Source: Octopus bimaculoides (taxonomy: Eukaryota). From it: DNA of 57,122 nucleotides. The notes beneath the pieces were generated by a model. The model had not been told where the DNA came from. It saw only the letters and a program-made list of their open reading frames with translations, and searched no databases. The stretch is taken from contig NC_068985.1 of NCBI RefSeq assembly GCF_001194135.2, forward strand, positions 51,021,821-51,078,942, in the 5' to 3' direction. Of this stretch, positions 19,739 to 41,139 are shown piece after piece. How positions within the stretch are numbered: the first letter of the stretch is position 1; every line of letters begins with the position of its first letter. A program made the position numbers and the translations under genes.

Positions 19739-19860
19739 CTACTCTTCTTCCTCCTCCTCCAACTGGCTCCAAGCTTCTTCAGCCAAAGCATAATAATGAC
19801 AAGCCATTCTACCATTCATTGCTTCTGTTGCCGCATCAGCTGCTTCAGTGTATAAGTCCC
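19739..19860 (-). CDS. EEF2K: eEF2 kinase coding exon 11 (last): GDLYTEAADAATEAMNGRMACHYYALAEEAWSQLEEEEEE*
   Basis: Matches the human C-terminus DLYTQAAEAAMEAMKGRLANQYYQKAEEAW. Acceptor ttgtag, phase 1 consistent, TAG at 19741-19739. Confidence 0.95.
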
Positions 19861-20624
19861 CTACAAGGAGTAATAAAGAGAACGTTGTCAGATATATTGA
19901 TATTAAATCTGTTACTGAAAAGCCCATCAAAATAGTACATTCAAAGAGATTTAAAAAAAGGAGAGAAACAAAAGAAATATGAATTAATGTGCATCTCATC
20001 ATTTGAATCAGCTTACATTTACTTTCTAAACTGGCGTGGGTTGGATGAGTTATTACTTCTCTCCTATTTGGGACGAAAGGCTGCATCTCACTTGAACATT
20101 TCATTTTGGCTTGATTCTTACAGCTGGATGCCCTTTCTAATATCAAGCACTTTGCTGAATACAAAGTGTGCATTTTATTATGGCACCAACATCAGAGTGG
20201 TTATCATCTCTTCAACAAAACTGAAGGGTCCTCGCAACCTCAATACTTTATATAGCGTACTGGGAGCCTTTTATTATGACAACATCTCTGAGGAAGACTA
20301 CCATGTCCTTAACCCAACATCACTGCTTACCAACCACTTTATGGAATAGGTCTGCAGAGCATAAATATTAGTGAAGATACATAAAATTTAAGGCAATATA
20401 AATAATCGCAACTAAAAAGTCTGCAGATAAAATTCATCTTAAATACAAGCCTAAGGTATTCAGTGGAGAGTAAAGAGAGCATTGTGATGTTAATGATTTT
20501 GTTTTGTTTTTTTACCAAGGGTATGGGAAAATTAACATGAGACTTGATGTTCAATTCCCCCACTTGAGTTTACTCATATGCAACAATGTTGGTAATACTG
20601 TTAAATAGTGACAATATAAATTAC

Positions 20625-20803
20625 CTGCTTTCTGAGGGTCTTTCTCAACACCAAAACCACCAATGTTGTAGATGTTTGCTTGTGCAGCAAGTAACAAATG
20701 CAAAGGGCTATGCATAGTAGAATTAAACAATTCAGAAGTATCATTCATTAAACTGTGGATGGCTTTATCATACCAGTCTATTGCTTTTTCCCATGACTTG
20801 GTT
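20625..20803 (-). CDS. EEF2K: eEF2K coding exon 10 (SEL1-like region: TKSWEKAIDWY...GGFGVEKDPQKA)
   Basis: Homology to GGYGLEKDPQRS. AG/GT boundaries; phase 2 in, phase 1 out. Confidence 0.93.
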
Positions 20804-22295
20804 CTATCAAAGAAAATTTTCAGCATAAGGACAAAGGAAACACAAAAATAAACAAACACAAAATTATTATAAATAAATGATTAAGATGTTTGCTTTGCAA
20901 CTAAATGGTTCTCTATTTATACCAGTGAAGCAGCTTGGACAAGCATAGTCTTAATACCTAGTGAGCAATATATGGTAACCAGAAACTGTGAAGCTCATCA
21001 TTACACACAGAGATACAGATATATCCTTCTTTCTTTCCTTAAACTTTCAACTCTTTATAGAGTTGCAGAGGTGCTGTGATGACACAGTGTAAACTGGGCA
21101 TTTTAAACCTGGTGGGACCTATCTCTTTCCAAAATGTGTGCATGTATGTGTGTATCTAAATTAGTGTGATGACATTTAATAAATGGAGATTACTAAAATA
21201 ATTAACAGTCTAAAATCAGTACTGAAGTTCATATGATCCACTAAAAACCTTTGAACACAGTTTCTCATCATGGCCTTATTCAAATGATTGAAAACCATAA
21301 AAGGAATAAAAGTATATAAATCAATATCATGTTATAAGTTCCACTCTACACCCTACTATACACACACATTCAGGTACAAGTTGCTTGCTATTTTCTGTTT
21401 CTTTTACAACAGTGATCACTTAAAAACCTTTTTGTTTCTTTATCTTACTATTGTATATTTCCAGATTTTATATTCACCATTATACCAATGGCAGCCAAAC
21501 TGCATCTTATGAGCTATATGCAGCTGTAAATGTTACAAAGTTTCTCTGCACACCACTCCTGGGCAAACAGCTTATTCAATGAAATATTTAGATTCCCTCA
21601 TGCAAGCACAATGTACTGAACTGTTTGAGAATCATATTGGAAACATACTGTACAGCACCATGGATGTATGGTGCTTTGATAGGTTTACAGTGCCTAGGGT
21701 ACATGACAGTATCTTACAGCTCTGTTAGTTGTTGAGAGCCCCAAGGAAGGAAGAGTGTGTATGTGTGTGATCTACCCAAGTCACACTAACATGAATATAA
21801 CGTTTTTTTTTTTTTAAAGTTGTGACCATATAATACAGTAGGTTACAGCATTCACTATGAAACTGAAAAGTATGAACGAGTCCAAATGACTGGGATTCTT
21901 TTGTTAGATGTAAAGTTATGGAAGAAAAACACTGGACAAGTAAGGAAAAGTGAAAAAAGAAAAAAGAATAATGAGGCCCCATTAATGATAAATAAGAATG
22001 GGATGACAGTAGTGAACTCTGGACTAAATGATTTGCTGTTATAAAGCAGAAAACAACTGCACAGATCTGTCTGTAGATCAGGACTGCCTACTTTCTTGTA
22101 TAATAGGATAGAATACAAGGAATTTACCAAAGGAATCTGACAATGATTGCTTAAATTCGAAAACCAAGTTATGAGTTTGACCCCTTCATCATTTAACCAT
22201 ATCATCTCTCTGGAGGTAATATGGAAAAATTTTCTTAAATCTCCTTTCCAAAAATGTTACTTTTTGCTTTTAATGAACAGAAATGATTCTCTGAC

Positions 22296-22411
22296 CTGTA
22301 AGATCCCAGATTATTTCCAGTCTCATAAGCTTTTGCCATGTACAATACAGCATCACGATCTCCTCTTTCAGCAGCATTGCTCATATAATCAACACCTTTG
22401 TCTAAGTCAAC
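22296..22411 (-). CDS. EEF2K: eEF2K coding exon 9 (VDLDKGVDYMSNAAERGDRDAVLYMAKAYETGNNLGSY)
   Basis: Homology to KGFDYLLKAAEAGDRQSMILVARAFDSG. ttcag acceptor, GTCAGA donor; 116 nt. Confidence 0.92.
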
Positions 22412-22708
22412 CTGAAAGGACAGAAAAGCATATAATGTATCTCTTTGCTTTATGGTGTTTCCTAATTTATACAAGTAACGGAGCAAGAAAGAAAAAGTTA
22501 GCAAATTTATTAGAGCCATTGCTGCTAGCATCAGTTTGCCGGCATTATTCAACTTAAAATAAGAAAAGATCATTTTGTTGATCTAAAGTTAAGTATTACA
22601 GTGCATACAAGGAATTAGAGATTACATACATTTCTAACTCTGCTGAAGAAAAGTTGTAGTAACATACCAAAGTGATTAGAGAAATTCCATAAACATATGA
22701 AGGGGTAC

Positions 22709-22740
<32 letters not shown>

Positions 22741-22924
22741 CACATACGATGGGCTTCTTTCAGTTTCCATCTACCAAATCCACTCACAAGGCTTTGGTCA
22801 GCCTGAGGCTATAGTAGAAGACACTTGCCCAAGGTGCCATGCAGTCGGACTGAACTCGGAACCATGTGGTTGGTAAGCAAGCTACTTACCACACAGCCAC
22901 TCCTGCACCTATATTTAAAAAGTT

Positions 22925-23965
22925 AAATTGCAAAATCTATCTGATTTCCAAAGAGGACAAATTATTGGAGTGGAGATAGATGGAGCTTCAATCACTAAAA
23001 CTACAGAGTGTTTTGGTGTTTCAAAAGATAACTAAAATCATGTTGGTATTCCAAAACCAAGGTAAAACCAGCTTTGGCAAGCATAATTCTGAATGGAAGG
23101 CAATGCTCAGAGAGAGGAGCCACAAAAAAGTGAAACATGTATCTAAAAACCATCAAACTGTAGCAGTAAAGCTAAACCACCATGATGCCAACCCAGTGTC
23201 AACTAAAACTATTCATCGTGAGCTCTATAAAGTTGGATACCGTAGAAGGGATGCAACTGCTAAACCGCTCGTCTCACCATCAACAGTGACAAGCAGAAAA
23301 AATGGTGTCTAGACTATCAGAAATTGTCAATGGCTCAAAGGAACAATACCATCTTCTCTGATGAATTATCATTCATAATTTTTTATCCTTCCACACCAGA
23401 GTGAGCTTATATCTGAAGACAGCTGAAAGAAGCCTCAAACCTTCATCGTTAACCCTTACCGTGAAGCATGGATGTGGCTCTGTGAGGATTTGAGCAGCCA
23501 CATCACAGAATTTTCTTAACCCTTTAGTTATTCTACAAAGCAGAGTTAACTCCAAGGATTACCTAAGTATTTTGGCTGATCATACCCATCCAATGGTACA
23601 AATATTGTCCCTTGATAGTAGTGTAATCTTCCAGAGCAATAGTGTAGCAATTGATATAGCTAGTGATATTCAAAGTTAGCATTTGGATTGGCCCTAACAA
23701 TTCCCAAATCTTAATATTATTGAGCGGTTATGGTAAATTTTGGAGCAGTAAATGAGGAGCACTTTCACCTCCACCCTTGTTACTGTAAGTGCTAAACAGG
23801 TTTTACTTGAAGAATGGCTCAAAATTCCCTTAACTATTCAAAACTGATACAAGTCAACATGGTGATTGAAGCCAAAGGTGGTGATGGAAGCCAAAGGTGG
23901 ACCAACTCCATATTAATAAAAAAAACATTCACTTGACAAGGTATTTCCATTATTTTTCTGAAGTG
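22925..23965 (+). mobile_element. Decayed Tc1-family transposon
   Basis: Frameshifted transposase: LSDFQRGQIIG, VSKNHQT, PVSTKTIHREL, AKPL, FSDE, TVKHGCGSV, WP.QFPNLNIIE, AKGGPTPY* (stop 23914-23916). Confidence 0.9.
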
Positions 23966-24717
23966 TGTGTGTGNNNNNNNNNNNNNNNNNNNNNNNNNNN
24001 NNNNNNNNNNNNNNNNNNNNNNNNNNNNNNNNNNNNNNNNNNNNNNNNNNNNNNNNNNNNNNNNNNNNNNNNNNNNNNNNNNNNNNNNNNNNNNNNNNNN
24101 NNNNNNNNNNNNNNNNNNNNNNNNNNNNNNNNNNNNNNNNNNNNNNNNNNNNNNNNNNNNNNNNNNNNNNNNNNNNNNNNNNNNNNNNNNNNNNNNNNNN
24201 NNNNNNNNNNNNNNNNNNNNNNNNNNNNNNNNNNNNNNNNNNNNNNNNNNNNNNNNNNNNNNNNNNNNNNNNNNNNNNNNNNNNNNNNNNNNNNNNNNNN
24301 NNNNNNNNNNNNNNNNNNNNNNNNNNNNNNNNNNNNNNNNNNNNNNNNNNNNNNNNNNNNNNNNNNNNNNNNNNNNNNNNNNNNNNNNNNNNNNNNNNNN
24401 NNNNNNNNNNNNNNNNNNNNNNNNNNNNNNNNNNNNNNNNNNNNNNNNNNNNNNNNNNNNNNNNNNNNNNNNNNNNNNNNNNNNNNNNNNNNNNNNNNNN
24501 NNNNNNNNNNNNNNNNNNNNNNNNNNNNNNNNNNNNNNNNNNNNNNNNNNNNNNNNNNNNNNNNNNNNNNNNNNNNNNNNNNNNNNNNNNNNNNNNNNNN
24601 NNNNNNNNNNNNNNNNNNNNNNNNNNNNNNNNNNNNNNNNNNNNNNNNNNNNNNNNNNNNNNNNNNNNNNNNNNNNNNNNNNNNNNNNNNNNNNNNNNNN
24701 NNNNNNNNNNNNNNNNN

Positions 24718-24762
<45 letters not shown>

Positions 24763-24832
24763 CTAAGTACTTTTTGACAATAAAATATTGCCAATTATGA
24801 AATTTGTCTAAACAAAAAAAAAAATTGCTTAC

Positions 24833-25024
24833 ACTCATAGGACAGTCAACTAAAATATCCCTCTGGAGACCAAGGTAGATCCTGGCCAAAGAGGAAATAG
24901 CTTCCAGGTTGCCCAGTTGTGCTGCATGTCTTTCATGATACATAGCAGACTCCCAGTCAATTGGAGAATTAGCATCTTTCTTAAATCTTCCCAGTTCATA
25001 GTATTTAGCAATTTCATGGTGAAT
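24833..25024 (-). CDS. EEF2K: eEF2K coding exon 8 (IHHEIAKYYELGRF...AAQLGNLEAISSLARIYLGLQRDILVDCPMS)
   Basis: Homology to VHLAMVRYHEGGRF...HAANLGELEAIVGLG. ttcag acceptor, GTAAGC donor; 192 nt, phase 0/0. Confidence 0.93.
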
Positions 25025-27217
25025 CTGAAATATAGTTTGTCATTTATCAAGACATGAATATCTGGTAAAGAAATCACAGCAAACTTGTTCTCTTTTAAAA
25101 TAACTCTACAAATAACACCTTCATTGTGAAATATTTCCAAAATTAAAAGTGAACAAGAAATTGTATACCTTTCTTTTTTTTATATGGAATAGACAAACAC
25201 ATTTCTAAACATGCTAATCATTTGAAGACATATAGGTTTGAGTGCAAAATGTCAAAGTTAATTTCATTGGGGATTTAGATTTTTAGATATATGAGAAACT
25301 TGTATGTGATGCTATTTGTATGTGAGAATAATTTTCTCATAAATAGAGATTTACAGCACTCCAAAAGTCTTTTTGTATATCAAAACAAACTATTTTTAAT
25401 TTCTGGTCTACCATATTTAACCATCTATTCATTCTTTATGCATTGTACCCAATCCAATATTAATTTAAATCAATTTTAAACTAAACTATTTTTACTCAGC
25501 TCTTATAAAGGAAAGTCTTAAGTTCTTTACCCCTCAAGTAGATGTTGAACTATAAGATAGATAGTGTCCTTCATCTTCCCACCATCCCTCACATAGTAGT
25601 GAACACCTTTTACAGTAAGAATGTACCCAATTATGATATTACAATTCTTATTTATTCCCAAGAATATCTCTTCAAAAGCTTTTATGTATGCGTATACTGT
25701 TTCATTTTGTAGTTGTTTTTTTTTAAAGTCCATTAGAATGCATTATGATTTTATAACATGAAAGTCAATGGGAAAATTAATTTTGGCTGCAAGATTTTGT
25801 ATTACAAATTTTTTAGGAACACATTACTTTTGTAATGTGATTCATGCACTTTGCTCAAAGACATATGTCTACTGATCCATGAATTGAACCCATGACATCA
25901 GGATCATAACATCCTAACTGATATGTTAAAATATTTTATGTTTCACTTTTCCCGAAACAAATATAGGGCTTCCATCAGTAAAGACCGACTATGCATCTGA
26001 CATGTATGCACAGGCCAGGACAAGATTTTACAGTTGAAGGTGGTGACCCAGCATGGGTTGAGGGAATCCTTACTCCAAGATTTCAAACAAATTGGAGCTG
26101 ATTTGTGAAGTAGTGGATGAAAAAAAAATGTACACCAATATGCATGCATTCATGCAAGTCCTGGTAATTAAATGCATGCAATGTTAAAAATCAGTCATAT
26201 GGTTGAAGCAGGGCACAGTACATACAGCATGTATGTATCCTCTTTCTGCATAACAGTAATGTTTTTCCAAAGGAAAGGACATTGACTAAAATCAATACAT
26301 CTTGGCCTCATTGTCAGTGCATGGTATTATTGTGTGAACAGGAATTGGAACAGATAACACAAAGCATCTTGCCAAACCCTTAAACAGTTCTGCCAATATG
26401 TAGCCTTAGTACCATTTTATCAACTCAAAGAGTGGAAGAAAGTTGACCATGGCAGGTCATCTCAGAGCACAGAGATGATTCAACCTAGATACAGTTTTAT
26501 CTAAAGCAGAGAAGACTGCAGTTAAAAAAGAAAAAGAAACCAACATGCAAGCAGTGAGCTAGGTAGGAAACCAGTGACAATCACCAGGTATTTTACAGTT
26601 ACATTATAATTTTATAGTTAGTCTGATTATAGATGGACATCCTAATACATATGAAACCATGTCTGTATGTATGTGTGTGCTGTGTATTAGATCTAAGTTC
26701 AATCATTGTTTTATCATTAATTTTTCCATGCTTGCACGAGTCATATGAAATTTGTTGAAGCAAACTTTTATGGCCAGATGTTTTTCCCGATACCAACTCT
26801 CACCTACTTCCAAGCAAAATAATACTTTATCTAGTCCTTTGAATATGAACAAGAGAATTGCTGGCCATGTTTTCACTGAAGATTGCAAATAAATGACAGT
26901 GCTTGTCTGACACTATGCTTGTTTATAAAAAGTGCATAATATAAAAACAAGGAGATATGAACACACATATATAACCACATCTTATATCAAATCCATCTTT
27001 GGCTAACCTGGGACTATAGTAGATGCTTGCCAAGGCACCATTCAGTGGGACTGAACTCAAAATCACATGGCTGTGAAGTTATCTCCTTAACCATACAGTC
27101 ATCCCTGTGCCTATATAATAACCTACATAATGCAAGATCTTACTGCTAGTGTTATAGAAAATGTACTTTTGGTAGTTTTAACAAAATTTGCTTAATTTAA
27201 AAAAAAAAAAGAATTAC

Positions 27218-27343
27218 CATTCCAAGAATGTGCCAAGATTCTTCATAATAACTGTTGCATTTTTCAAGGCTTATTTTACCATTTACACATGAAGGACGAT
27301 GATTTCTACCAGCAATTTCATTAAAAGCAATTCTTTCTTCCTC
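27218..27343 (-). CDS. EEF2K: eEF2K coding exon 7 (EEERIAFNEIAGRNHRPSCVNGK...SWHILGM)
   Basis: Homology to HLPRASAV...SILGK. ctgcag acceptor, GTAATT donor; 126 nt. Confidence 0.88.
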
Positions 27344-27710
27344 CTGCAGAAAAATTAATAAGAAATAAAACAATGCTGCTTGAAATCTGGACATAAATGT
27401 ACAATCAACAACATTACTTAGTATAAAGAGAGTTCATTCAAATCACAATATATCTGCAATTCTGCTTCTTGATACTTTGGCTGCTAAATGATTAAAGTAG
27501 TGAGCCCTATGAAAGGACTTAAGACACTCCTGAAAATGTTGTATTTATATAGAGCATCTAGACTATGTGAGATTGGTAAAGTCCACGCTAATTAACTAAA
27601 ACTTATTACCAGACTGTACAAATATAAATTGTTACAGTAAAGTAGAATGAGTTTGATTATATATTTGTTCATTTAGGGTTAACCTGGAGTTACAGCAATA
27701 ATTAATTGGT

Positions 27711-28483
27711 AAGCATGATCTTCGAACTTTGAGCCTCACAAAGGCAATGACTGGTGACCAAGACCTTTGGCGATGTGCTGTGCTTGAGAAGACCCATTAA
27801 GCCAAGTGCACCCATGCTGGTGGCACATAAAGAACATCTTTTGAACATTAGGCCTCACGGAGACAAAGTGGCTGAGTTCCTCTCGAGCGTTGGACCTGAC
27901 TGAGTCAAAGTGGCTGAGCTTTCAAGCATTGGACCTCACAGAGGCAAAGTGGCTGAGTTCCTTTTGAGCGTTGGACTTCACGGAGGCAAAGTGGCTGAGT
28001 TCTTTTCAAGTGCTGGGCCTCACAGAGGCAAAGTGGCTGAGTTCCTTGAGTGCTGGGCCTCAGAGGCAAAGTGGCTGAGTTCCTTTTGAGCATTGGGCCT
28101 AACAGAAGCAAAGTGGCTGAGTTCCTTCCATGTGTTGGGCCTCATGGAGGCAATGACTAAGACCTTTGGCATTATGTCATGCTTGAGAAGAAGACCCATC
28201 AAGCCAAGCAAAATCACAGTTGTGACAGATACTGGTATCATGCAAATTAGCACCAATGCCAGTGGCATGTAAACATACCCCAGTGTCGTGCAAATAGCAC
28301 CTGTGCCTGTGGCACATAAAAGCACCCATTACACTCACAGAATGGTTGGTGTTAGGAAGGGCATCCAGCTGTAGAAAACCATACCAAATCAAACTGGAGT
28401 ATGGTGCAGCCTTCCAGCATGCTAACCCAGTCAAACCATTCAACCCATGCCAGCATGGACAATGGACGTTAAATGATGATGAT
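27711..28483 (+). mobile_element. RTE LINE 3' end with an internal minisatellite
   Basis: Starts at KHDLRTL (same ORF end as ~9970). Has the UTR agggcatccagctgtagaaa and the tail ggacgttaaatgatgatgat. Confidence 0.85.
27840..28150 (+). repeat. ~40-42-bp minisatellite, 7 copies
   Basis: Unit ggcctcacggaggcaaagtggctgagttccttttgagcgttg; the core aaagtggctgag was counted 7 times. Confidence 0.9.
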
Positions 28484-28934
28484 TTGCTTATTTTCTTATC
28501 ACCCTCAGAAAATATGAAATAAATGTTCCATAGAATTCTCCTGGATGTAATGGATATGTCACAATTGTCATACCAAACAATATTGAGAAAAAAATAAATA
28601 TATAATAAATATATATATTAAAGTGAAATGTATATTTTCACAAGACAGATTTGTCACAGATAATTTTTCCATTCACTCTAGGCATAAGAATAAGTCCTGG
28701 GGTTGATTTGCTCGACTAAAGGCAGTGCTCCAGCATGGCCAGAGTATTTCCAAAGAACAATAAAAGCAGAATTCCAAATATACAGATTTTATAAAGGACA
28801 ATTTATTGAGGGTGTTGTCAGGAGTGACACTGGAAAGCACAGCTTCATTGTTATTTCTTTTTATAAATCATTCGTTTCATTAACATTCAATCTTATATTC
28901 TGTTCATTTGACATTTTACAAAACAAATACATAC

Positions 28935-29258
28935 CTCTGTCATAGAATTTTCAGATTCACTAAAATAACGCATCCGTGAAACTCTGAAACATGGAATTGG
29001 ACTACCAAAAGACATTGGCTCTTCATCATTACTTAAACTGCTGTTCAAAGGAGAATGTCTTTCATTGCTGGACAAAGGAGAATGTCTTTCATTGCTGGAC
29101 AAAGGAGAATGTCTTTCATTGCTGAAGAAAGGAGAATGCCTTCCATTACTGCTCAAAGGAGAATGCATGCCCGAACTGAAGAAATCATGGATTTCAGCAG
29201 GTGATCCACATATTACTGACTCTTCAGTACCACGAACAACAGTCATGGGAGACTCAGT
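28935..29258 (-). CDS. EEF2K: eEF2K coding exon 6 (regulatory loop: TESPMTVVRGTEESVICGSP...repeats...SESENSMTE)
   Basis: Homology to AKTILRGTEEKCGSP. ttctag acceptor, GTATGT donor; 324 nt, phase 0/0. Confidence 0.92.
29047..29167 (-). repeat. 27-bp in-frame coding tandem repeat, ~4.5 copies
   Basis: Plus-strand unit aaaggagaatgtctttcattgctggac; copies 1 and 2 are identical. Encodes (E/G)RHSPLSSN. Confidence 0.95.
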
Positions 29259-29875
29259 CTAGAAATAATAAAATATATGGAAAACAAAAAACAGAAATCA
29301 GTGCTCTACACTAATACCAATACATAATATATACTAAAATAATGAATACATATGATTGTGTATGTGAGTGTATATCTTGGATACAACTGATGATGCTTAG
29401 AAAAGCAAATGACAATGATAAACTATAACAATTTCCAGCAATTTCTAACATTATCATCATTTTATGTCTATTTCCCCAAATTGTCATGATGTGGATGGGT
29501 CTTACAGTAACTCATCATTCAACTGCAATACCCCGATACACAGCAACAGAAAAAAAAATACTGTTTTTACTATTGTTTGTTTTTTGTCATGGTTTTTATA
29601 GCTGGGTGTCCTTCCTATCACTAATATTTTACAGCATGGACAGGGTGCATTTCATCATGCCAAAAGCACAACCCCACATTGATGCCACTAACCAAAATGT
29701 AATAATGATTTTCCAAATTGGTACAAAGGCCTAAATTTCTAGATAAAGGGTGAGCTGAATTGAGTCCAGTGTATAACTGGTATGTGATTGAACACAAAAG
29801 GGTAAAACTGATGGCTTGATTTTGAACTCAAAATATAAAAGGTTGGAAATAGATATTGAATGGGTTTTATTTAGT

Positions 29876-31803
29876 ACTAGCCTAAGTACCCAATGTTGCT
29901 CGGAAGTTTAAATAATGTTAAAGGAAATAAATTTATTTATTTTGATAAAAATATATTTTTAGAAAAATTCTATCAGATGACGTGAGTATAAACAAAGTTA
30001 TTAAAACAAATCCTGAAATCAATCGCAGTTTAATTTTGTAGAACTTCTAAATATACAATGTTTTCAGCGTGTCCTTTAATTGGGGTACAAATAAAAAGAG
30101 TTTTGAGACTTCCAACTCGCAAACATCCTACATATAATTGCCCATGAGAGAAGCAAGGTTAAGTCCAACAACCTTGAGAAATTGTCCTTGAGATTTGTTT
30201 ATGGACATAGCAAATGTAGTAAGAGTTTTCACCAGGTGTGCATCTGTATGAAGACCTTTCGTTATTTAGAAACCTTACAGTTTCTTTTTCTATTGAAAAT
30301 TACATAAGTTGTGTGTAACATCGAATTTTAAGTTTTACATTAAAGTAATCCCAATTCTTCACGGAGGCTCCCTGCGACTGCGAGGGTTGCATGGGCTTAG
30401 CACCGGCCCTGCTGTAAACAAATTTATGGTTTAAGGTTACAGTTAGGGGTAGTATTTAGTGAGTATGGTGTTATTGTAAATATTTACCAAATTTTTATCC
30501 AGTCACAATTATGTTTATCAGCAACCAACCTTTGTGTGAAAGCATTGGTGTGAATGCATGAGCAACAGGATGGTACACAGAAAAGTACTTCTTACATACT
30601 TTGCAATCAATTCATTGGATTAATCCCAACAAAATACATGTTTAGTCAGTGGCTCAGCATCTATGCTTGTATCCTTCATTCCAAAATAATAAAAACTTTA
30701 ACATACTTCCAAAATGGGGCTTCATCCATATGTATCTGTGCGCATATATGTGCAGGTGTCTGTGTATGAGTTTGTAGAGGGTTAAAGCACAAGAAAAACA
30801 TTTATGGAAATGTACTCATAAAAATTCTATTAAATTATCTTTATATGCTATGTTTGCAATTCTCTATATAAATGATAGCAAAGTGTGTATCAAATGAAAT
30901 TAAAATCCTGGTTCAGTAACAGATTGATCAAGTTAGTAAAGTTTTAATGTTTTCAGTAACAACACATTTTCTCTTCTAATTAGATATTGAAAAAGAGAGA
31001 AAATGCCACCCTTTCTTTTGTAAGAGAAATCAATTTTGGCAGTAAGGATTAAACCACTTGTTTCACTATCACAATTAAAAAGCATTTATCTTTACTTAAA
31101 AAAAAAAAAAGGTGAGGGTTGTAGACGTATGATGGAGAATTATTCAATATAGTGTTTGCTTCTATCAGAATCATTTAACTTTAAAACATAAAAACAAAAC
31201 CAGTGTATACAACGGGTATGTAAAACGTTTGTTTACTTTCTCTGTTCATTCACATAAGCTGTAGAAATTATTGTGCACATGCNNNNNNNNNNNNNNNNNN
31301 NNNNNNNNNNNNNNNNNNNNNNNNNNNNNNNNNNNNNNNNNNNNNNNNNNNNNNNNNNNNNNNNNNNNNNNNNNNNNNNNNNNNNNNNNNNNNNNNNNNN
31401 NNNNNNNNNNNNNNNNNNNNNNNNNNNNNNNNNNNNNNNNNNNNNNNNNNNNNNNNNNNNNNNNNNNNNNNNNNNNNNNNNNNNNNNNNNNNNNNNNNNN
31501 NNNNNNNNNNNNNNNNNNNNNNNNNNNNNNNNNNNNNNNNNNNNNNNNNNNNNNNNNNNNNNNNNNNNNNNNNNNNNNNNNNNNNNNNNNGTTTCTTTGC
31601 ATATTAGGAATCTGTCATCAAAAACATGGGAATCTGCTAAAAAAAAAAATTGGGTCTTGGTCAGGGACTACAGCCAAAATTTGATGCCCCTAGAAACTTC
31701 CCAGAGTAGTGAAAAACCTTTGTGGCAAACTTGGTACAGATTGATCCAGCAGTTTGGCTGTGCATAGGGACACATACACACAGTGAATTTTATATATTAA
31801 GAT
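29876..31803 (+). mobile_element. Possible Helitron/Helentron-like non-autonomous element (ends only recognisable)
   Basis: Left end ACTAGcctaagtACCCaatGTTGCTCGG. Right end ...gattgatccagcagtttggctgtgcatagggacacatacacacag...ttttatatattaagat. Both resemble termini of rolling-circle-derived MITEs. Linkage of the two ends is assumed across other repeats and a gap. Confidence 0.35.
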
Positions 31804-33483
31804 AATAATACAGTTTCTGCTATTTTCAACTATTATAGTCATTTGTGTGTGGGAAGAAGGTGAATAATTGCTTGCACAAGTCCTAAATTTGTAGGGAGGG
31901 TTATAATTAGTTGAATTGATCCAAATCTTTTTTTTGTTTTTGTGGTGTTTATTTGACTAACACCAAAGAAGTGAGAGGTAATTCCAGCAAGGTTAAAATT
32001 TGGGACCCTGAGGGATAAAATTCAATACTATAAGGTAGCACTTAATCTGGTGCTTCACCATTTGTGCCACTCCAGTGATAATGGTTTCTAAGTTTGGCAC
32101 AAAGTCATATATTTTGGAGTGGAAAGGAATTAAGTCAACTGAAATGATTCCAATTTTCAATTGGAACTTCATTGAACCTTGGGAAGGACAAAAGGTAAAG
32201 TTAATCTTAATAGAATTTGAACTCATGAATGTGTAAATGGCAAAACTAAATACTGTAAATCTTTAGGCCATTGGTTCTTGGGTAGTAGCACCTCCCCAGA
32301 GGCATTGTGAGCTCATAATGGAGCACTAGATGTTTAGAGCGGGCATGAAATTTTTTTATTAATAAAATATTAAAACCAGGTATAATACATATATTTTAAA
32401 AACACATTTTCAAGAAAACCTTCGTCAGAATTAAAATATAAAAGTATAGTATTATCAGAGAGAAGAAACATGACTGGTGATCACTATAATTTCATTATCT
32501 AAAAGTCATTCTGTCAAGGTTGACTTTGCCTTTCATCCTTTCAGGGTTGATAAAATAAGTACCAGTTGAGCATGGGGGAGTCAATGTAATCAACTTCTCC
32601 CTCTCCTCAAAATTGCTGGCCTTATGCTAAAATTAGAAAAAAATATCTAAGTTCTTGTTTTCTTTAGTAATTTCAATAAAACTTTAACACAGTGAGTACT
32701 AATACATGCAAATATCAGAAAAGCTTGATCAAAATGATTTTTTAAAATTTTTGTAAAACATCATTCCATGATAGGGGGTTTTGAATTATACATAGTCAAG
32801 GACCAATGCTTCACCTCATTCTCTTCACTTTACAGCTCCAATACAGCAATGCATACTCCCTATTTTGTATATCGGAACCAAATTTAGATATGCAGTAAAG
32901 GGTTACATTGTGTTACTTGATAGGCCAGAAACTGATTAATTTGTATTCAGCTTTTACAATTTGTTTCTGTCTCTTATTTTTATTTATGAAAAGGAGAGGT
33001 AACTTTGAAGACATAACTGCCAATTCAACACCATATTGCAACAGAGTGGATTCTATTAAAGACCCAAAAGATTCAGGTGGTAGAGTTAAACCTGTCAACA
33101 GATTACGTCAACCATCTAAGAATAAAAAGAATCTATCCAACAAGCTTCTTCAGTTTTTATCTTCCTTATTTCACTCACAAAGGTTAGATCAATTCAAGGC
33201 CAAGGAAGAAAACATTTACTAAGAGTGGTAGGCAATGAAATCAAACCTGGAACTCTGTGATTGCAGAGCAATCTTCTTAACCATGTACTTGTGTCCATTT
33301 ATTGGGCCCATCATGTATTTAGTTTAAACATTATTTTGAGCACATTCTAATTTATATACACAGTCTAGTTTATTTCTTACATATTCAGTTTATTTTACAT
33401 CTTATTCATAAGTAATCACCAGTTCTGAAGAACACAATCAACAATTCTGAAGAATAAAAAAAATAGAAAAGAACTGTACACAC

Positions 33484-33744
33484 CATAATATGGACAGGCA
33501 GATTTTGAATTCTTTTCTCCTCAGATGACAAATCAAATGGTGAAAGTTTCAGAGATTTGCATATTGAATTGCAGCGGTGTGAATGAAAAAACAGTGCCAT
33601 TCCCTTTGTACCCAAATTGCCATCACCATATTCACTGCCATCAGCTGTATGTATTTGAGGATCAGTATAAAGGTCTCCAACACCCTGAATATCAACCACA
33701 ATCATTTCATGGCCAGAACGCTCAAATGTAAAATGACTGAAAGC
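33484..33744 (-). CDS. EEF2K: eEF2K coding exon 5 (alpha-kinase C-lobe: [33 protein letters not shown]...GDGNLG...[11 protein letters not shown])
   Basis: Contains DIQG, GxGNLG and the HxCxxxC zinc motif. ctccag acceptor, GTGTGT donor; 261 nt. Confidence 0.97.
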
Positions 33745-35020
33745 CTGGAGAAAAAGAAAAATAAGTGTTAATCTCTATGAACTAAATGCAAAGCCAATTT
33801 ATTCAGAGATAAAATAAGCATTATATAGATTTGTGTCATATCAAAGACATAATTTAAATTCATTATGTACTGAGACTAAATACTATAAGGCTTTTAATCT
33901 GGTATGTTACTGTTTCAGTCAAATAGCAGGCCAAATATTTACTGCTTACATTTACATCAGGCTAGAAATTTATCAAATTTAGCTAATAGATCAATCCTAG
34001 AGTGCATGATCAGAACTTATTTTGTGAAGCCCAAAGAAGATTCGAGCAAGATCTGAACTCAGGACATACAAGTAGGTTGCACAAAACACTCATGTTATTA
34101 GTCAGTACTTGACCATTTTTTGCCACTCCACCACTTTCCTAATATTGCCATCAAATAAGAAATGTGTGTTTCTTACACAAACATTCAAAATGGTCTACAG
34201 AAACCGAAAGTTAGATAAAGCAATTAAAATACAAATAATAAAATAAAATAACAAAACTGTTCTTTGTACGCAACTTGGTAGCAAATACCAAGTTATTGCT
34301 GCTTTAGCTACCTATGTAATTGTAAGCAAACACAGACACCCTTTCAGCCCTCCCATCCTTACCTAGTGGAACACTGAAGGATGTAACAACTGGAGGGACA
34401 GAGTATTGCAGCAGCACTTGGCTGGAACTTGTTTTTAGCTGAGTAAGGTGGAGCAACACAAAATAAAATGCCTTGCTCTAGGACACAATGCCCCATCGAG
34501 ACCAGGAAGTGAACCCACGAACTTATGATTGAGTCCAACATCCTAACCTCTAAGTTGGAGTGTTGGACTCCCAATACCAGATACAAACTGAAATTAAATG
34601 ATTTTAAACCGAGTAAAAAAAAAATTCCTTTGCATGACACCTTTGAATTTGTATTGTTAAAAGGCTTAATCTTTTGCTTTGACATTCTCAGGAAATTCAG
34701 AGAAACTCTGCTAGTTAATGATAAAATATATATTACACAAAACAGGAAAATACACAAGTAATCCAAAAAGGGAAGGTAAACAATAAGTTAAAAATATCTT
34801 TAAGGAAGGGCATATTTAATAGTCAACTTCCATACAAACTATAAAAGTCTATTTTTAAAAAGAAAAAATTTGGTTTGACTATTCCCAACTTTTCTGCATT
34901 TATTTATTGACAAACCTGTCAAACAAAAATAGCAACATCTTATGTATTACAGACGATGCTCATGAAAAGATATACTTAACAAGTAGCTTTCTTCATGTTA
35001 ATATTTCTAGTGAGGAAAAA

Positions 35021-35232
35021 GGTGGTGAGCTTGCAGAATCATTAGCAAGCCAAGCAAAATGCTTAGTGGCATTTTGTCCATCTTTACATTCTGAATTCAA
35101 ATGCTGCCAAGGTCAACTTTGCCTTTCATCTTTTCAGGGTCAATAAAATAAGCACCAGTTGATTACTGGGGTCAATGTAAGCAACTTAACCCCTCTCCCC
35201 CGAAATTACTGGCCTTGTGCCAAAATTTAAAA
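35021..35232 (+). mobile_element. tRNA-derived SINE (family A)
   Basis: ggtggtgagcttgcagaatcattagc...ctgaattcaaatgctgcc. Other copies ~32500-32650(+), 36630-36778(-), 44625-44775(-), 54900-55060(-). Confidence 0.8.
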
Positions 35233-37175
35233 CTGATATATCTAATAAGGAAGTGACGGTGGGGTGGATATGACAGAAACAGTAAAAGGATATACAAAAT
35301 GACATGCATTATTTAGTCGCATATCTTCATGTTCTAGGTTCAAATGCTACTGAAATTAACTTTGTCTTTCATCGTGTTGATAAAATAAATATCAGTTGAG
35401 AACTGAAGTCCATCTAATCAACTATACTCATCTTGCAAATTTGAGGCATTATGCCTTGTACAAAATCAACATTAACAATAATAAGATGGTGGATTGCTTA
35501 GTTACATCCTTTTATGTCCTGAGTTCAAATCCCCTAAGTCAGAAAATAGATAAGAGTTACATGCTGAGAGTTGATTCTACAAACTTCAACTACTGGTAGA
35601 CAGTGCAAATGAACCATAGTCATTTAAGTCTCTAGATGTGCTGATACCAAGCAATATTAAGAAAAGAAATTCAGTTTGGTAGAGAGTATTAGGTGAAGTC
35701 AAAAATAATATATAAATAATATTCAAGGACACAAACAAAGTTGAAATATTTTGTTAGCAAGTTAAAGTACTTAAAATTTTTCTCTTGAGAATTCTGTTGG
35801 AATTATCACACAGACCTAAACCTACATATGCAACTACCAGTTATTTCTCTTCCCTTGCCTCATTCTTTATCAAAGTAACTTTACTAAATCAATTTAAATT
35901 GCTTCATACAAACTAGCCTACCTCCATTTTGTGTCACCGTTGTTCTTGTTACAATTTAAAATATATACATATTTAGTTTTGCTATTCTATTTATGAAGGC
36001 AGTGCTTTGGAATGGTAACAGTTCAATAACTCAAACCAGTGAAAGAATATATACTCTCTAAAATGTCTCAAACAAAACAACAATGGAATTTCAGAAATAA
36101 AACATACCTTATTAAATAAGAGACACTTCAGAATGCATACAGTAAAAAGAAAAAATTATTTACTCGATTAACAAACCTCATCTTACTGCAGGTTTTCAGA
36201 CACTGTCTTCTGGTGTTTTCAGTCATTTTGACAAATATTATAACATTTTACTCTTCAACATTGCCTGTTTTATCCAAATTACTTGAGTTTTACACTACCC
36301 CTGCTCTTCTCCCATATTTTTAAAAAGTGTATTCCCAATCCATCAAAGGATCTCATTCCTACCTTCAATCTTTCAATCAAACACTGCCCTTTTATCACTT
36401 TAAAAAATCAAAACAACTACACTGATTGTACTATCTGAGAGCTACAATTTGCTAAATTGATAGAATGTTAGGCTGTGAAGAACAGTATATATTGCCTTGG
36501 ATGCACAATTCCTGGTGGAGTTGTAGGGATGCTATCTTGACATATGGCATATATTGGTCCCTTTAAACTGAGTAAATTCCATAGCTCTCTAGGTCTTACT
36601 ACAGCTTACTTCTTCCAGAAAGACTGATCGAATATAGAAATGGGCAGTAGTTTACTGACCACAAAAGATTAAAGGCAAAGTTAACCGTGGCAGTATTTGA
36701 ACTCAGTGTGTAGAAAACTAGAACAAATATCACAAGGCATCTGTCCAATACTCTGATGACTGCCAATTCACCACCTAAAATAGCTCATATTTTATTCCTT
36801 GAATGATGCAAGCACTTAGTGAAGTATTTTATAATTCACAAGTGTTTCATTAGTTGGAAATGAACAACTATTTCATTAGCTGGCAGTACTGAGTTCTTGT
36901 ACAGCCTGAAGAAGGCAATTCGAAACCACTCCATGTATGTTCCCTGAAATTTCTGTAGGTGCTTCATAAACAGAGTCACTGAGAATCATCCTCGATTTAC
37001 TGGTGATCCTTAATCATGCATGCTTTGAAGACTCACAATAGTGATGATAATTAGCTTTATTTTCACATACAATAAAAAATAAATATGATCAAAAGCAAAT
37101 TTGAAATATTAATCATGACAGCTGCAACAATTCCAATATTCTAAAGATAGGAAATCTACAGAATTGAATTCTCAC

Positions 37176-37322
37176 CTGTGGGGTGGAACGTAAGTCTTCA
37201 ACAACATATCCCGAATTTGAATTATATTTGATGTAATCACCTTCGATGAAATGCTCAAGATGATAGAGAGGGTTTCCCTCACGTTCATGAAACTCAAGAA
37301 CATACATCTGGAAGATGTCTAC
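37176..37322 (-). CDS. EEF2K: eEF2K coding exon 4 (VDIFQMYVLEFHEREGNPLYHLEHFIEGDYIKYNSNSGYVVEDLRSTPQ)
   Basis: Alpha-kinase EHYIEGxYxKYNSNSG motif. ttgtag acceptor, GTGAGA donor; 147 nt. Confidence 0.97.
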
Positions 37323-37586
37323 CTACAAAATAATAAAGGTATGAAAAGAAATTTCAATTTGAAAAATTTTCTACATAAGCTGGTCGATCATTTCAGGTGT
37401 CATTATTATTGACACCTGAAAGAGAATTATGCTACTGTTTTTAAGACATCTGAAACTCAAACTAACAAAAATAAAATATAGATATTACACTTACACATAC
37501 AACTTTAAATTATACAAATAGAAAGTTTTATTACAATAATTCTTATGAGATATGCTGACTACAGATTTTAATTTCTTTTTTTAATA

Positions 37587-38851
37587 CCATAAAAATCCAT
37601 GTAATTTGCGCACCTGTGATTTTCAAGATAAAATTTGTTAAGAAAAAGCTTCTACTCATGTAAAATTCACACCCAAAAGTTTTCAGAATTGCTGATATAG
37701 CCAAGGGAAAAAGGTTTCCGATTTAGTCATATTTAGCATAATTTCACTTACTTATGATTAGATTTTATTAAAATTTCACTAAATAAAAATAATTTCTGTT
37801 TAACAAGTATCACATTGAAAGCTATTAAATTACAAAGTGTTTGTGTTGTTTATAATAAACTCTACTTTACATTTCTTGCCCACAAGAGAATGTCTGATCT
37901 TTAGCATACTGCTTGTATGTCTTTTCAAATCACAATCACAGGAAAAGATGTGGATAAGAATTACCAATAAAAACAAAGCTGATAAATACACACAGGTGTT
38001 GCAAATCAAGTTTAATTACTAATAAACATCAGCTTGGGTGACACTTTACTCAACCGACAGAGGAAGGTGATTAATCAAACTGATTATGTAAACAGAATTC
38101 TTTTCTGCCTATTCTTGTTGGAACCTTTGATATGGAGTATCAAAATTTTAATCTCTTTCACACTTATAAAATGTCAAGCAAACTTTAAAATTTGTCATTA
38201 CCATTATTGTCAGTAATGGGCAGAACTTATGAATCGTTTACTGCGAAGGTGAAATCAAATATGTTGAATATGCATTTGAACGTGGCAATAGAGCTGCTGG
38301 AAGGAATTTTAATATTAATGAAGCCAATGTTCGAAATTGGCATAAACAATACGACAAACTTAAAACTGAGCCCAGTAATAAACAGACAAAAATAAAAACA
38401 TACAATCAAGATTATCCATAGCATTACATTTTTTTTCACTCAGGAATATCCATATCACTATGTCAATGGTGCTCCATTGCGACAGGTAGAAACTCCAAGC
38501 AATTTAAAATATGACCCAGATCGTGTTTACCAGCATGAACATCAGACTTCAAAAAGTAGTTAACCATTTAATGGTTTTAGAAAATTTATACAGAAAAAGT
38601 ATGCATTATACTGTCCAGCATACATAAAAGTCAACTTCATTATATTTAAGCCATCATATTTTTCTGCAAAAACCTATTCTGACATTAAATAAGTCAACTT
38701 CCGATATGAATGTTTACGTTTTATACCTTTTTTTTCAACAAAAAAAATTTCATAAATTCTAGAAATGATCTACTCAATGTAATTTACACACTCGCTAAAG
38801 TTTATTTTTATTTTTGTGAAAAAAGTGCATAAATTGCATGGTTTTTTACAG
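37587..38851 (+). mobile_element. Decayed pogo-like (TcMar) DNA transposon, internally deleted
   Basis: Imperfect TIRs ccataaaaatccatgtaatttgcgcacct / aagtgcataaattgcatggttttttacag. Frameshifted MGRTYESFTAK..KYVEYAFERGNRAAGRNFNINEANVRNWHKQYDKL (38216-38375) resembles the Brinker-type HTH of POGK/pogo proteins. Confidence 0.7.
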
Positions 38852-39367
38852 AAATCAAAAATTTAGAAGGATTCAGTAAATCCTTATCATTGTTTTAATG
38901 TTCACGTTTCCAAATTGGCATGGGTCACTCATTGAGGCAGTTTTTCTACAGATGGATGCTCTTCTAGTCACCAGTCCTCACTGGTTTCCATGAAAGTGAT
39001 TACTCATCCTTTAAACAATGAACAGCTATGTAGCGGTGAAGCAAACTTCTTAACCAATATATTAAATAAATATTTGGAACAACCAAATTTTCTGATATAA
39101 AAATTTTAAGATTTAAAGTAAAATACAGTTTTGTATCATAGAACCAGGAGTGACCTTAAGTAGTTGGGTCTCAAAAATAGTTAAGGTACAATGTTATATT
39201 GCTTTAAAGTTAGTCATGATTTGGGTCAATTCTGGACAAAACTTCTCTAAATAACTATAGGACTTGAACTCTTGATAGTTAGTCCAGTATTTCATCTTTT
39301 TAAATCTTCAGTCAGCTTGCCCCAACATTTATAGCACAAAGTTAAATCAAGAGAGAGTTTTTCTTAC

Positions 39368-39539
39368 TTTTTTTGGTGGATTATGCCTGTTATATTCCTC
39401 TCCCCATAATTTAGCATCCATTTGCAGTTTGACATCTTCAAAATAAACACTCCTGTCAACATCTTCCAAATAACGCTTTGCAACATAGTTCTGAGCATGT
39501 TTCCAGTCACCATGATGAGTAAAATTGGAGAGCTTCTTC
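39368..39539 (-). CDS. EEF2K: eEF2K coding exon 3 (KKLSNFTHHGDWKHAQNYVAKRYLEDVDRSVYFEDVKLQMDAKLWGEEYNRHNPPKK)
   Basis: Read directly (not in the ORF track). Contains the invariant YVAKRY lysine. ttccag acceptor, GTAAGA donor; 172 nt. Confidence 0.97.
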
Positions 39540-40744
39540 CTGGAAGTTATTAAATTACAAATGATATTATCTATGTATGTAATACAATTAAAGCCAGCTG
39601 TTAAAACATCAGTCTCTCATATTGCACACAAGCATCCTTAAATGAAATAATGGAAATGAGCAAGAATTTATAACAAGTCTTGACTGTAGATTAGTCAAAA
39701 ATACAATCTCCAAAGAGAATCAGAACTGTAAAATATTGAATTACTACTGACATCCTTTGGACAAGAAAGGAACCATGTAAATATTCAGCAGCTAACTACC
39801 AATAACTTGCAGACATCAACTTGCATTTAATTGGAATCATGAAGTCAACAGTATCAGAAAATCAAGTAGAACAATAGCAATGATTGGAATAAATTTTGCT
39901 ATCACAGAAACTTGCATATTTTCCAAGGGGATGAGAGATGTTTGATAGTCAAAATTCTATTACAGAAGAGAAAGTTGCCTTTTAGCAAACTTAGTAGAGA
40001 TTAAAGCAAATATAAACATTTATCTTGCTCAACAAGTCAATGAAATTTTGAAATTTTTTATTTGAAGTGTTTCATGAAATCCTTTATGGCTGCATTTGCT
40101 AATGAAGTTAGAAATATTAATGTAGGTATGAATTAGAACATATGTAAACAAAATTAGAATAAGAAATATAAATTCAAATATGAAGGTAGTTTTATACAGT
40201 TTTGAGTAAAAAAAAAATTGAAATTTTTGCAAGTTCTTCAAGCAGAAACAAAAACATTCCATAGCTACCAGTTAAAGCTTAAAACTTCCAAAAGTATATC
40301 ATCATAAATATATTCTATGATCTGGAACTTTGAAAACATCTTCCAAAACTGATATACCAATCTTGTCTCTTTCAACAGCAAAACACAATCATTACTAATG
40401 TCAAGAAAACATTACCACACCACACCTACTTAAACATGAGTGACACATAACTACAGCCCTCATGACTACTCCAAATGGTGGATATCACAATCACCAAGGA
40501 TGTATCTAGGTGTAAACACATCCTTAGCATAGCTAGGACCACACATAGTGATTGAACAATCTCTTCAGGTTCAAAGAATACTTCTGCTTCCAGCAATTAT
40601 TGAAAAATACAAAGAGCAGTTAAGGTCTGTAAGTGAATATTTCTCTTAACATCTGAGACAGTGCTGTTGTTGCACACACAGACACCATAGACTGCATCCT
40701 GAAGAGCCCTCCCCAACAACTGAGTGGTATAAATTCACTCACAG

Positions 40745-41070
40745 ACACACTCTAGTCACTGTCTTTGCTTTATGCCTTTTCCACTGCAACTATAATGGTC
40801 TCTGTTCTTTGGAGTTGGCTGAAATTATACCATCTCCACTCAAACATCCCAACCAAACCCATTCATCTCTATTCCTTCTCCTCTTGCCCCACCCTGACTT
40901 GTGTTAAACACCCTAGATCCTGCACAAACCACGATGCTCAGTTCTTCATTCCCAGAGAGTCATCCCTCTGGAACTCCCTCTCTGCTCATATCTTTTCTGT
41001 AAGTGTTGACCTGCAATGCTTCAAGATGAACATTAATAGCATCAATCTCACTAGTCTCAGTGAGCTAGAG
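40745..41070 (+). mobile_element. Decayed jockey/I-group LINE ORF2 C-terminus
   Basis: YNGLCSLELAEIIPSP...HPRSCTNHDAQFFIPRESSLWNSLSAHIFSVSVDLQCFKMNIN matches the typical FIPRTSSLWNSLP LINE C-terminus. Confidence 0.65.
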
Positions 41071-41139
41071 AAGGCTATGGAAATTACCTCCTCCTTCAGA
41101 CCCAACAGAAAAAAAATCCAGCTTTGTTTCAGTTTTGGG

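Follow-up and report, generated by a model that had tools for sequence, protein, structure and literature searches.

Octopus eEF2K and its repeat-bearing exon

The DNA analysed here, a stretch of 57,122 nucleotides from Octopus bimaculoides (the window; NCBI RefSeq assembly GCF_001194135.2, contig NC_068985.1, positions 51,021,821 to 51,078,942), carries on its minus strand the gene of the eEF2 kinase eEF2K, one exon of which encodes a tandem repeat in the regulatory loop of the enzyme. We know of no other kinase that switches off eEF2. The disordered regulatory loop of eEF2K is the site at which nutrient, growth-factor, stress and cell-cycle signals converge, and control of the enzyme matters for synaptic plasticity in molluscs (Aplysia) and in mammals.

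The coding span (19742..43241) comprises 11 coding exons, whose minus-strand translation is identical to the annotated O. bimaculoides eEF2K at 688 of 688 residues (XP_014779788.1, 688 aa; P0001), with concordant results in tblastn. The alpha-kinase catalytic domain is recognized by Pfam (Alpha_kinase, PF02816, E=3e-58, scoring 197 bits where the cut-off is 21.3), and the alignment to the human eEF2K structure 7SHQ reaches 414 bits over octopus residues 77–355. The N-terminal calmodulin-targeting region also aligns, and its W79 is nearly invariant among the aligned eEF2Ks. Residues 481–684 align with the C-terminal domain of 7SHQ, and with 6NX4 and 5KS5, as expected for the SEL1-like helical repeats and the eEF2-binding tail. 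The Pfam Sel1 match itself is weak, and AlphaFold2 models the C-terminal region as helical with a predicted local distance difference test (pLDDT) score of about 90. In agreement with an initial annotation made from the nucleotide sequence alone, these matches place the protein in eEF2K of the alpha-kinase family, and Ca2+/calmodulin-dependent activity on Thr56 of eEF2 is predicted. The public annotation already holds the eEF2K protein with the repeat included, and our literature search found no paper discussing the octopus eEF2K repeat.

The array was detected by Tandem Repeats Finder at 29039–29165 (period 27, 4.7 copies, 90% matches, no indels, score 191). Read in register, it consists of five 27-nt units on the minus strand (29037–29171, residues 366–410) within coding exon 6 of 11. 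The initial annotation had placed it in exon 6 at 29040–29175, which is right within about 4 nt. In the reverse-complement translation the array is immediately preceded by TESPMTVVRGTEESVICGSP, and the open frame of exon 6 reads TESPMTVVRGTEESVICGSPAEIHDFFSS-GMHSPLSSN-GRHSPFFSN-ERHSPLSSN-ERHSPLSSN-ERHSPLNSS-LSNDEEPMSFGSPIPCFRVSRMRYFSESENSMTE. This translation bears out the five-unit peptide reported initially, as do RNA and DNA reads and the proteins annotated for three Octopus species. Units 3 and 4 are, as had been noticed, identical over all 27 nt in O. bimaculoides, far beyond chance, and the codons CAT TCT CCT are the same in five of five units. The units lie head to tail and in frame, their period of 27 being divisible by three and recurring in Argonauta. 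They make up a 27-bp coding minisatellite within coding exon 6 of eEF2K, so far found only in octopods. Its candidate phospho-acceptor serines are S369, S378, S387, S396 and S405, contained in the tryptic peptides HSPLSSNER, HSPFFSNER and HSPLNSSLSNDEEPMSFGSPIPCFR.

A search of representative proteins with the exon peptide gave 23 matches. The four that were inspected (P0136, P0137, P0139 and P0149) are unrelated and carry nonapeptide tandem repeats of their own: SEERHQPLI about 11 times in P0136, NNQHSPGST about 13 times in P0137, NTRHSPKAE about 12 times in P0139, and RDSPLYLNI in P0149. They were rejected as homologues of the octopus exon, the HMMER matches reflecting periodicity and composition only, and the comparison points to an independent origin of nonapeptide H-S-P repeats in unrelated proteins. 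An opposite-strand feature or RNA family at the array was likewise rejected: the other strand of the array and exon region holds only short, repeat-derived plus-strand open reading frames (ORFs), and no Rfam family matched in 27000–34000. The MHSPL of unit 1 is met again in the folded C-terminal domain (NSTMHSPLHLL, P0001 residues 616–620, exon 10 at about 20700–20720), where it is kept in Argonauta (MHSPM) and cuttlefish; this recurrence is probably a coincidence.

Transcription and copy number of the array

Transcription was followed in three RNA-seq runs from 2026 with 150-nt reads. The RNA depth is even across the array, and begins and ends at the exon 6 edges. At the upstream junction, 28 reads continue from 29259 with the last part of exon 5, joining ...NLPVHIM to TESPM. 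At the downstream junction, 20 reads and one contig pass from the exon 7 acceptor (loose ends at 27345) into the end of exon 6, with an agreement of 1.0. No skipping from exon 5 to exon 7 was found among the junction-spanning reads of these runs, nor did the three runs contain internal joints, 27-nt indels or base differences in the array. RNA editing of the repeat was therefore rejected, as the same runs held no T>C or other difference in exon 6 or exon 7 at a level of at least 10%.

The genomic reads gave the same picture. Raw DNA reads (X37) showed no differences from the reference across the array, and the raw-read check for indels and joints, which covers four runs (X20–22 and X37), was negative throughout. 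In five further DNA runs from at least four samples, the same four unitigs (k=31) were recovered, and Logan contigs support the sequence. The depth of the 35-nt unitig spanning the junction from unit 3 to unit 4, relative to that of the shared 52-nt unitig, was 0.46–0.54 in the five runs. Two identical units predict a ratio of 0.50, three units 0.67, a 2/3 heterozygote 0.60 and a 1/2 heterozygote 0.33, so that the depths fit exactly two identical units, i.e. the reference allele. A longer allele was considered for run X25, in which the flank-normalised depth is elevated, and was rejected because the internal 35-mer/52-mer ratio of 0.52 fits the reference. The possible length polymorphism that had been proposed thus found no support: no copy-number polymorphism within the species was detected in the samples examined, which are few enough for rare alleles to be possible. 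These results show that the array is real and transcribed, without visible length polymorphism in the available samples.

Three intronic segments flanking exon 6 (28290–28489, 28690–28889 and 32490–32689) draw hundreds-fold RNA read depth, and about 98% of the reads there extend into dissimilar sequence, pointing to strongly expressed dispersed repeats that resemble short interspersed or other transposable elements.

The array lies in a regulatory loop predicted to be disordered

The human regulatory loop offers a frame for the octopus exon. Human numbering was taken from the peptides L342LQSAKT348ILRGT353EEK and T364LS366GSRPPLLR (PMC3286862). In the alignment to 7SHQ, octopus TVVRGTEE pairs with human TILRGTEE, and the longer segment PMTVVRGTEESVICGS with human AKTILRGTEEK-CG. 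By this alignment and numbering, octopus T342 corresponds to human T348, T347 to T353, and S355-P to S359-P, confirming the initial matching of the MTVVRGTEE..CGSP stretch with T348 and S359. T342 and G346 are invariant in the 42 aligned eEF2Ks, as expected if T342 is the counterpart of T348, the primary activating autophosphorylation site, and an equivalent of the proline-directed inhibitory S359 site is present in octopus as judged from the alignment. In human eEF2K, S359 is inhibitory, nutrient-sensitive and phosphorylated by the proline-directed kinases p38delta/SAPK4 and Cdc2 (PMC3286862, PMC12509998), S366 is the p70S6K/p90RSK site, and S396 and S398 also regulate the enzyme (PMC3286862, PMC9258954, PMC12509998).

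The array starts ten residues past the S359 equivalent, within the counterpart of human 359–489. It is followed by an acidic block, (D/E)(D/E)EPMS, and a further Ser-Pro, both conserved across molluscs (alignment A1). Beyond them lies the RxRxxS motif ending at S436, the sole basophilic AGC-type consensus that remains in the octopus loop. It directly precedes an acidic SESE.S run, aligns near human S470/S474, and is kept in cephalopods, gastropods, bivalves, an annelid and a hemichordate, which makes it a candidate conserved AGC-kinase input of invertebrate eEF2K. Together with S339-P, S355-P and S422-P, the five HSP sites form a cluster of S/T-P sites in residues 339–423. AlphaFold2, run on the 42-sequence alignment, gave a pLDDT below 50 for residues 339–442 and no secondary structure for 362–443, placing the array in a loop segment predicted to be disordered; in this model, several clustered S/T-P sites share one disordered segment, as in a multisite proline-directed module of the Sic1, NF-H or CTD kind.

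The octopus and human loops are alike in protein, domain order and position, in the T348, T353 and S359-Pro equivalents, and in being disordered and rich in Ser and Ser-Pro. They differ in that the human sites (T348, T353, S359, S366, S377, S396 and S398) are single and non-repetitive, with S366 in a basophilic R-T-L-S context for S6K/RSK, whereas octopus has five tandem R/x-H-S-P candidate sites and no RxxS. As to function, the linker is proposed to couple the kinase and C-terminal domains, and its phosphorylation to alter that coupling (PMC3286862). A human enzyme in which the segment 359–489 was swapped for six glycines keeps both its activation by calmodulin and its phosphorylation of eEF2 in cells (PMC9258954).

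Distribution and age of the array

The octopods compared were three Octopus species and Argonauta hians; Cirrata, Vampyroteuthis, Nautilus and other octopodids lie outside the sample. A protein search with a stretch of 259 residues around the loop gave only distant fragments and added no octopod. O. vulgaris and O. sinensis have five units each and differ from O. bimaculoides by substitutions only, in contigs that are gap-free over the exon. Their array reads GMHSPLSSN-GGHSPFFSN-GRHSPLSSN-ERHSPMSSN-ERHSPLNSS, and the rebuilt contigs equal the annotated proteins exactly. H-S-P is invariant in 15 of the 15 units of the three species.

Argonauta hians (P0002; locus L001) shares the exon structure of Octopus. 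Its array is longer and degenerate, with about 10 units, and Tandem Repeats Finder again gives a period of 27: GMNSPLISN-KQFPFNNN-GRQSPFENN-RREYPINNN-ERHFPFNNN-DRQSPFTHE-RRTHISFG-EKHSPSSSA-ERPSPSNSY-ERHSPLSSY. S-P is present in six of the ten, three have F/Y-P instead, and one is degenerate. The first, a GR.SPF-type and the last unit match Octopus units 1, 2 and 5. Between the two genera the edge units are as conserved as the flanks and steadier than the interior. Since these three units are common to both, the last common ancestor of Octopus and Argonauta would have carried an array of at least three unit types, and a young age is suggested for the ERHSPLSSN subfamily only. The identical DNA of units 3 and 4 had been taken to imply a recent expansion. 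This does not hold, as the same five units occur in the sister species, where units 3 and 4 differ at two positions, and a degenerate 27-nt array occurs in Argonauta; the identity is not evidence of a very recent duplication.

The lineage-specificity suggested initially was upheld. The repeat is absent from the Sepia/Acanthosepion cuttlefish cluster (P0003/P0127) and from a second decapodiform (84% identical to Sepia), both of which have a single stretch, LLARS[KR]SSHS[SG]S[NA]STDDE, in its place. It is also absent from gastropods, bivalves and other phyla, the sample being these two decapodiforms and the other 90 parseable animal eEF2Ks. When repeat strength was scored in 87 sequences (the search hits and Octopus cluster members with a parseable loop), a strong tandem repeat was found only in Octopus sequences, with scores of 18.5 (O. 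bimaculoides) and 12.5 against at most 5 elsewhere. The other mollusc eEF2Ks (Aplysia californica P0044, Batillaria P0006, Sepia P0003/P0127) are orthologues, 50–60% identical, and share with octopus the flanking blocks ..SP, (D/E)(D/E)EPMS-x-x-SP, RxRxxSESE and MTEEEE. Unlike octopus, they have a single L-[AG]-R-[HS]-[HK]-S and lack a tandem repeat (best score at most 5, compared with 18.5).

Loss of the basophilic site and probable origin of the repeat unit

We defined as the slot the segment between the S359-type SP and the acidic block (D/E)(D/E)EPMS. The octopus array occupies the slot that holds human S366. R-x-x-S/T occurs in the slot of 40 of the 42 aligned eEF2Ks, Octopus and Argonauta being the exceptions. 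A pattern search over 96 parseable hits gave the same result: 92 had R-x-x-S/T, two were mis-parsed and two, the octopods, lacked it (92 of 94 correctly parsed). No R..[ST] lies in the slot of either genus, and hence no equivalent of the basophilic S366 site; the initial remark that an RxxS366 context is not evident was correct, there being no RxxS in the repeat. The usual slot motif is ...D[IL]T..[LF]L.R[QH][RH]S, exemplified by LGRHHS in Aplysia, LDRQRS in oyster relatives, TRQRTLS in Saccoglossus and VRTLS366 in human. S/T-P also occurs within the slot in 33 of the 42 sequences, up to five per slot, so that proline-directed sites appear, in this alignment, to be an ancestral theme of the slot.

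Our alignments A1 and A2 contrast in one respect with Table 2 of PMC3286862, in which S366 is scored as not conserved in Aplysia or Saccoglossus: at the S366 position we find R-H-H-S in Aplysia and R-Q-R-T-L-S in Saccoglossus. Conservation of the S366-type site outside vertebrates may therefore be under-appreciated. Rapamycin-sensitive regulation of eEF2 phosphorylation is described for Aplysia neurons in PMC3418764, in a passage citing earlier work; no particular serine of Aplysia eEF2K is assigned here to S6K.

The octopod unit x-R-H-S-P-L-S-S-N aligns with the R-x-x-S and following serine run of other molluscs (A-R-H-H-S-S/N... in gastropods, A-R-S-K-S-S-H-S-S-S-N in cuttlefish). From its position and residue pattern, the unit is most plausibly a remodelled copy of the S366-type site. 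In such an origin, an ancestral R-x-x-S with its serine run would have lost one residue between Arg and Ser, moving the Arg from –3 to –2, and would have gained Pro at +1 to give R-x-S-P. Slippage or unequal crossing-over would then have multiplied the unit, to the present five in Octopus and about ten degenerate ones in Argonauta. As read from the alignments, a conserved basophilic site of the eEF2K loop has been overwritten by a tandem Ser-Pro array, in octopods only among the sampled taxa; among about 94 animal eEF2Ks, octopods are by this comparison the sole lineage without R-x-x-S at this place, and have the array instead.

A putative multisite phospho-module and its alternatives

The reading that we favour, tentatively and at a little less than even chance, is that the five HSP serines are additional proline-directed phospho-acceptors that tune inhibition of the kinase. 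The five R/x-H-S-P serines would serve CMGC kinases of the MAPK, CDK or DYRK type and would supplement the S359-type inhibitory site, inhibition being graded by the number of phosphorylated sites; the phospho-rheostat suggested initially is in these terms a reasonable hypothesis. The S6K/RSK-type input at the slot would be lost, and the conserved RxRxxS (S436) would remain downstream. Pro at +1 is disfavoured by AGC kinases, and if this applies at the slot, S6K/RSK input there has probably been lost in octopods. The units, with Arg at –2 and Pro at +1, would fit the preference of DYRK, given that DYRK1A favours Arg between P-2 and P-4, together with Pro or a small hydrophobic side chain at P+1 (PMC3677093).

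Several points weigh against such a role. A full-text literature search found no phosphoproteome of octopus or other cephalopods, nor mutant data, that would bear on eEF2K phosphorylation. The three F/Y-P units and the degenerate unit of Argonauta imply that individual serines are dispensable. By inspection, the optimal determinants of MAPK (Pro at –2, PxSP) and CDK (Lys/Arg at +3, SPxK/R) are missing from the units. The likeness among units reaches synonymous sites, which points to shared descent or homogenisation and does not demonstrate selection on H-S-P. Between O. bimaculoides and O. vulgaris/O. sinensis, the array has three non-synonymous and one or two synonymous changes, against one and three in the rest of the exon; these counts, tiny as they are, suggest relaxed constraint. 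Other animals attain 5–8 S/T-P sites in the loop without a repeat. Finally, the slot is not needed for catalysis, as human eEF2K without 359–489 is still active.

The most serious alternative, itself quite possible, is a near-neutral expansion of low complexity, in which a slippage-prone 27-bp unit multiplied in a tolerant, disordered linker and carried Ser-Pro along without a specific regulatory role. It accords with the predicted disorder of the loop, with the replaceability of human 359–489 by six glycines without loss of activation (PMC9258954), and with the ease with which such units seem to arise, similar xRHSPxxx/xQHSPxxx nine-residue repeats being present in unrelated proteins. Drift is evident in the Argonauta units, some of which have Phe or Tyr where the presumed acceptor Ser would be, and the genera differ in copy number and unit content; the array is nevertheless in frame in both, and its edge units are conserved like the flanks. 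Likewise, unit identity that includes synonymous sites and a non-synonymous to synonymous ratio that looks higher in the array than in the remaining exon favour near-neutrality, against which stand five copies in three Octopus species with no polymorphism in the samples examined, the invariance of H-S-P in all 15 Octopus units and the retention of S-P in six of ten Argonauta units. The array moreover replaces a motif found in 92 of 94 correctly parsed eEF2Ks, an uncompensated loss of which would be surprising. Comparison with other coding minisatellites is similarly divided. The octopod array resembles them in its period of 27 nt, its frame, its edges steadier than the interior and its unit turnover between genera, and differs in that the octopus array has no detected within-species length polymorphism and the same copy number in three species. 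Overall, a regulatory function of the HSP serines and near-neutral expansion are about equally likely.

Restoration of linker length is an improbable explanation. It supposes that the ancestral cephalopod slot was short and that the repeat mainly restores the distance from the kinase to the C-terminal helical-repeat domain, the two domains that the linker is proposed to couple (PMC3286862). The slot measures 23 residues in both decapodiforms, with a median of 35 in the 42 eEF2Ks, and reaches 57 in Octopus and 97 in Argonauta. However, decapodiforms function with 23 residues, Octopus and Argonauta are 40 residues apart, so that no particular length is maintained, and human eEF2K tolerates the loss of the whole segment.

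Multivalent docking is slightly less probable still. Here pSer-Pro or R-x-[SFY]-P-[LF] units would bind a partner, such as a WW/Pin1-type protein or an F-box phosphodegron reader, rather than tune activity. Human eEF2K has a degron in the same regulatory loop, and Argonauta keeps the Pro and the next hydrophobic residue even without Ser (FPF, YPI, FPF), which would suit such binding. On the other hand, binding is purely putative, and on inspection the units match none of the known short linear motifs. A GSK3 priming relay, which requires Ser at –4, was rejected because each HSP serine has Asn there, 14-3-3 motifs of mode I/II because they call for Arg at –3 or –4 together with Pro at +2, and a beta-TrCP degron because it needs DSGxxS.

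Least of all can the array be an artefact, either an assembly duplication or sequence absent from the mature mRNA as intron or skipped exon, two objections that the initial annotation had raised against itself: the window has many N gaps and the array breaks k=31 contigs, neither being positive evidence, and against them stand the 150-nt RNA reads that cross the array from end to end at flat depth and without joints, the confirmed exon junctions that keep the repeat in transcripts, the single gap-free contigs crossing it in two sister species, the raw reads and unitig depths that agree with the reference copy number, and a chromosome-level annotation that encodes it.

A more far-reaching form of the multisite reading, which we regard as unlikely, is that octopods, beyond lengthening a flexible loop, rewired the main growth-signal input to the brake on elongation, the S366-type site becoming R-x-S-P, a context disfavoured by AGC kinases, and then an array of 5–10 sites read by CMGC kinases (MAPK, CDK, DYRK, or mTORC1 directly). 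Were this true, octopus cells, neurons included, would have gained a switch-like and differently wired control of translation elongation. The neurofilament-H KSP repeats and the heptads of the RNA polymerase II C-terminal domain are similar in being short tandem Ser-Pro units, disordered and of lineage-variable copy number. They are dissimilar in having tens of units with documented phosphorylation and readers, whereas the octopod array has 5–10 units in a kinase linker and is known from its sequence; no homology is implied. If the array is phosphorylated, it would be a natural experiment in a change of upstream kinase class and in the passage from a single site to a multisite module. If it is not, it would be a clean case of a conserved regulatory motif lost and overwritten by minisatellite expansion with the enzyme intact.

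Other features of the window

The positions of the exons, repeat units and loop motifs are collected in Table 1.

Table 1. Coordinates in the window of the eEF2K coding exons, the repeat units and the motifs of the regulatory loop
Feature	Position	Strand	Basis
eEF2K coding exons 1–4	43241-42852, 41580-41542, 39538-39365, 37319-37176	minus	P0001 exact match
Coding exon 5, C-terminal part of alpha-kinase domain, joined directly to repeat exon	33484..33744	minus	translation, RNA, Pfam
Coding exon 6, 324 nt, phase 0-0, residues 337-444, start of regulatory loop including repeat	28935..29258	minus	RNA, translation
Exon 6 splice sites	acceptor AG 29260-29259, donor GT 28934-28933	minus	
T342-V-V-R-G-T347 codons, equivalents of human T348 and T353	29226..29243	minus	phmmer alignment to 7SHQ
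C353-G-S355-P356 codons, equivalent of human inhibitory S359-Pro	29199..29210	minus	alignments
Unit 1, GMHSPLSSN	29145-29171	minus	in-register translation
Unit 2, GRHSPFFSN	29118-29144	minus	in-register translation
Unit 3, ERHSPLSSN	29091-29117	minus	in-register translation
Unit 4, ERHSPLSSN	29064-29090	minus	in-register translation
Unit 5, ERHSPLNSS	29037-29063	minus	in-register translation
F420-G-S422-P codons, further conserved Ser-Pro past acidic block (D/E)(D/E)EPMS	28998..29009	minus	mollusc alignment A1
R431-M-R-Y-F-S436 codons, RxRxxS motif	28959..28976	minus	sequence inspection, alignment A1
Coding exon 7 (EEERIAF...SWHILGM), joined directly to repeat exon	27218..27343	minus	translation, RNA
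eEF2K coding exons 8–11	25024-24830, 22408-22295, 20802-20623, 19858-19742	minus	P0001 exact match

Within the eEF2K gene, exon 10 read through past its donor (20554–20880, minus strand) gives a product ending in ...DPQKAGNLYCHYLTVLPTLLHMSKLKWGN followed by a stop codon. Isoform X2 of O. sinensis (P0123) has a near-identical end, ...GNLYCHYLTVLATLLRMSRLKWGN, and the read-through may represent a conserved intron-retention isoform without the final eEF2-binding helices. The intron between exons 6 and 7 contains a tandem repeat of 40–42 nt at 28009–28142 (about three copies, 81–87% matches), whose minus-strand ORFs give recurrent peptides of the 'SATLLL/QPLCLCEAQ' type.

Elsewhere in the window, a mariner/Mos1-type transposase remnant extends over several frames of the minus strand at 4810–5934, with Pfam matches to Transposase_1 (E=1e-15, 5151–5450) and, weakly, to HTH_48 (5662–5934). 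A minus-strand ORF at 2002–2802 has a Pfam match to the N-terminal portion of Alpha_L_fucos (E=1.5e-33) and probably belongs, as an exon, to the gene next to eEF2K on its downstream side.

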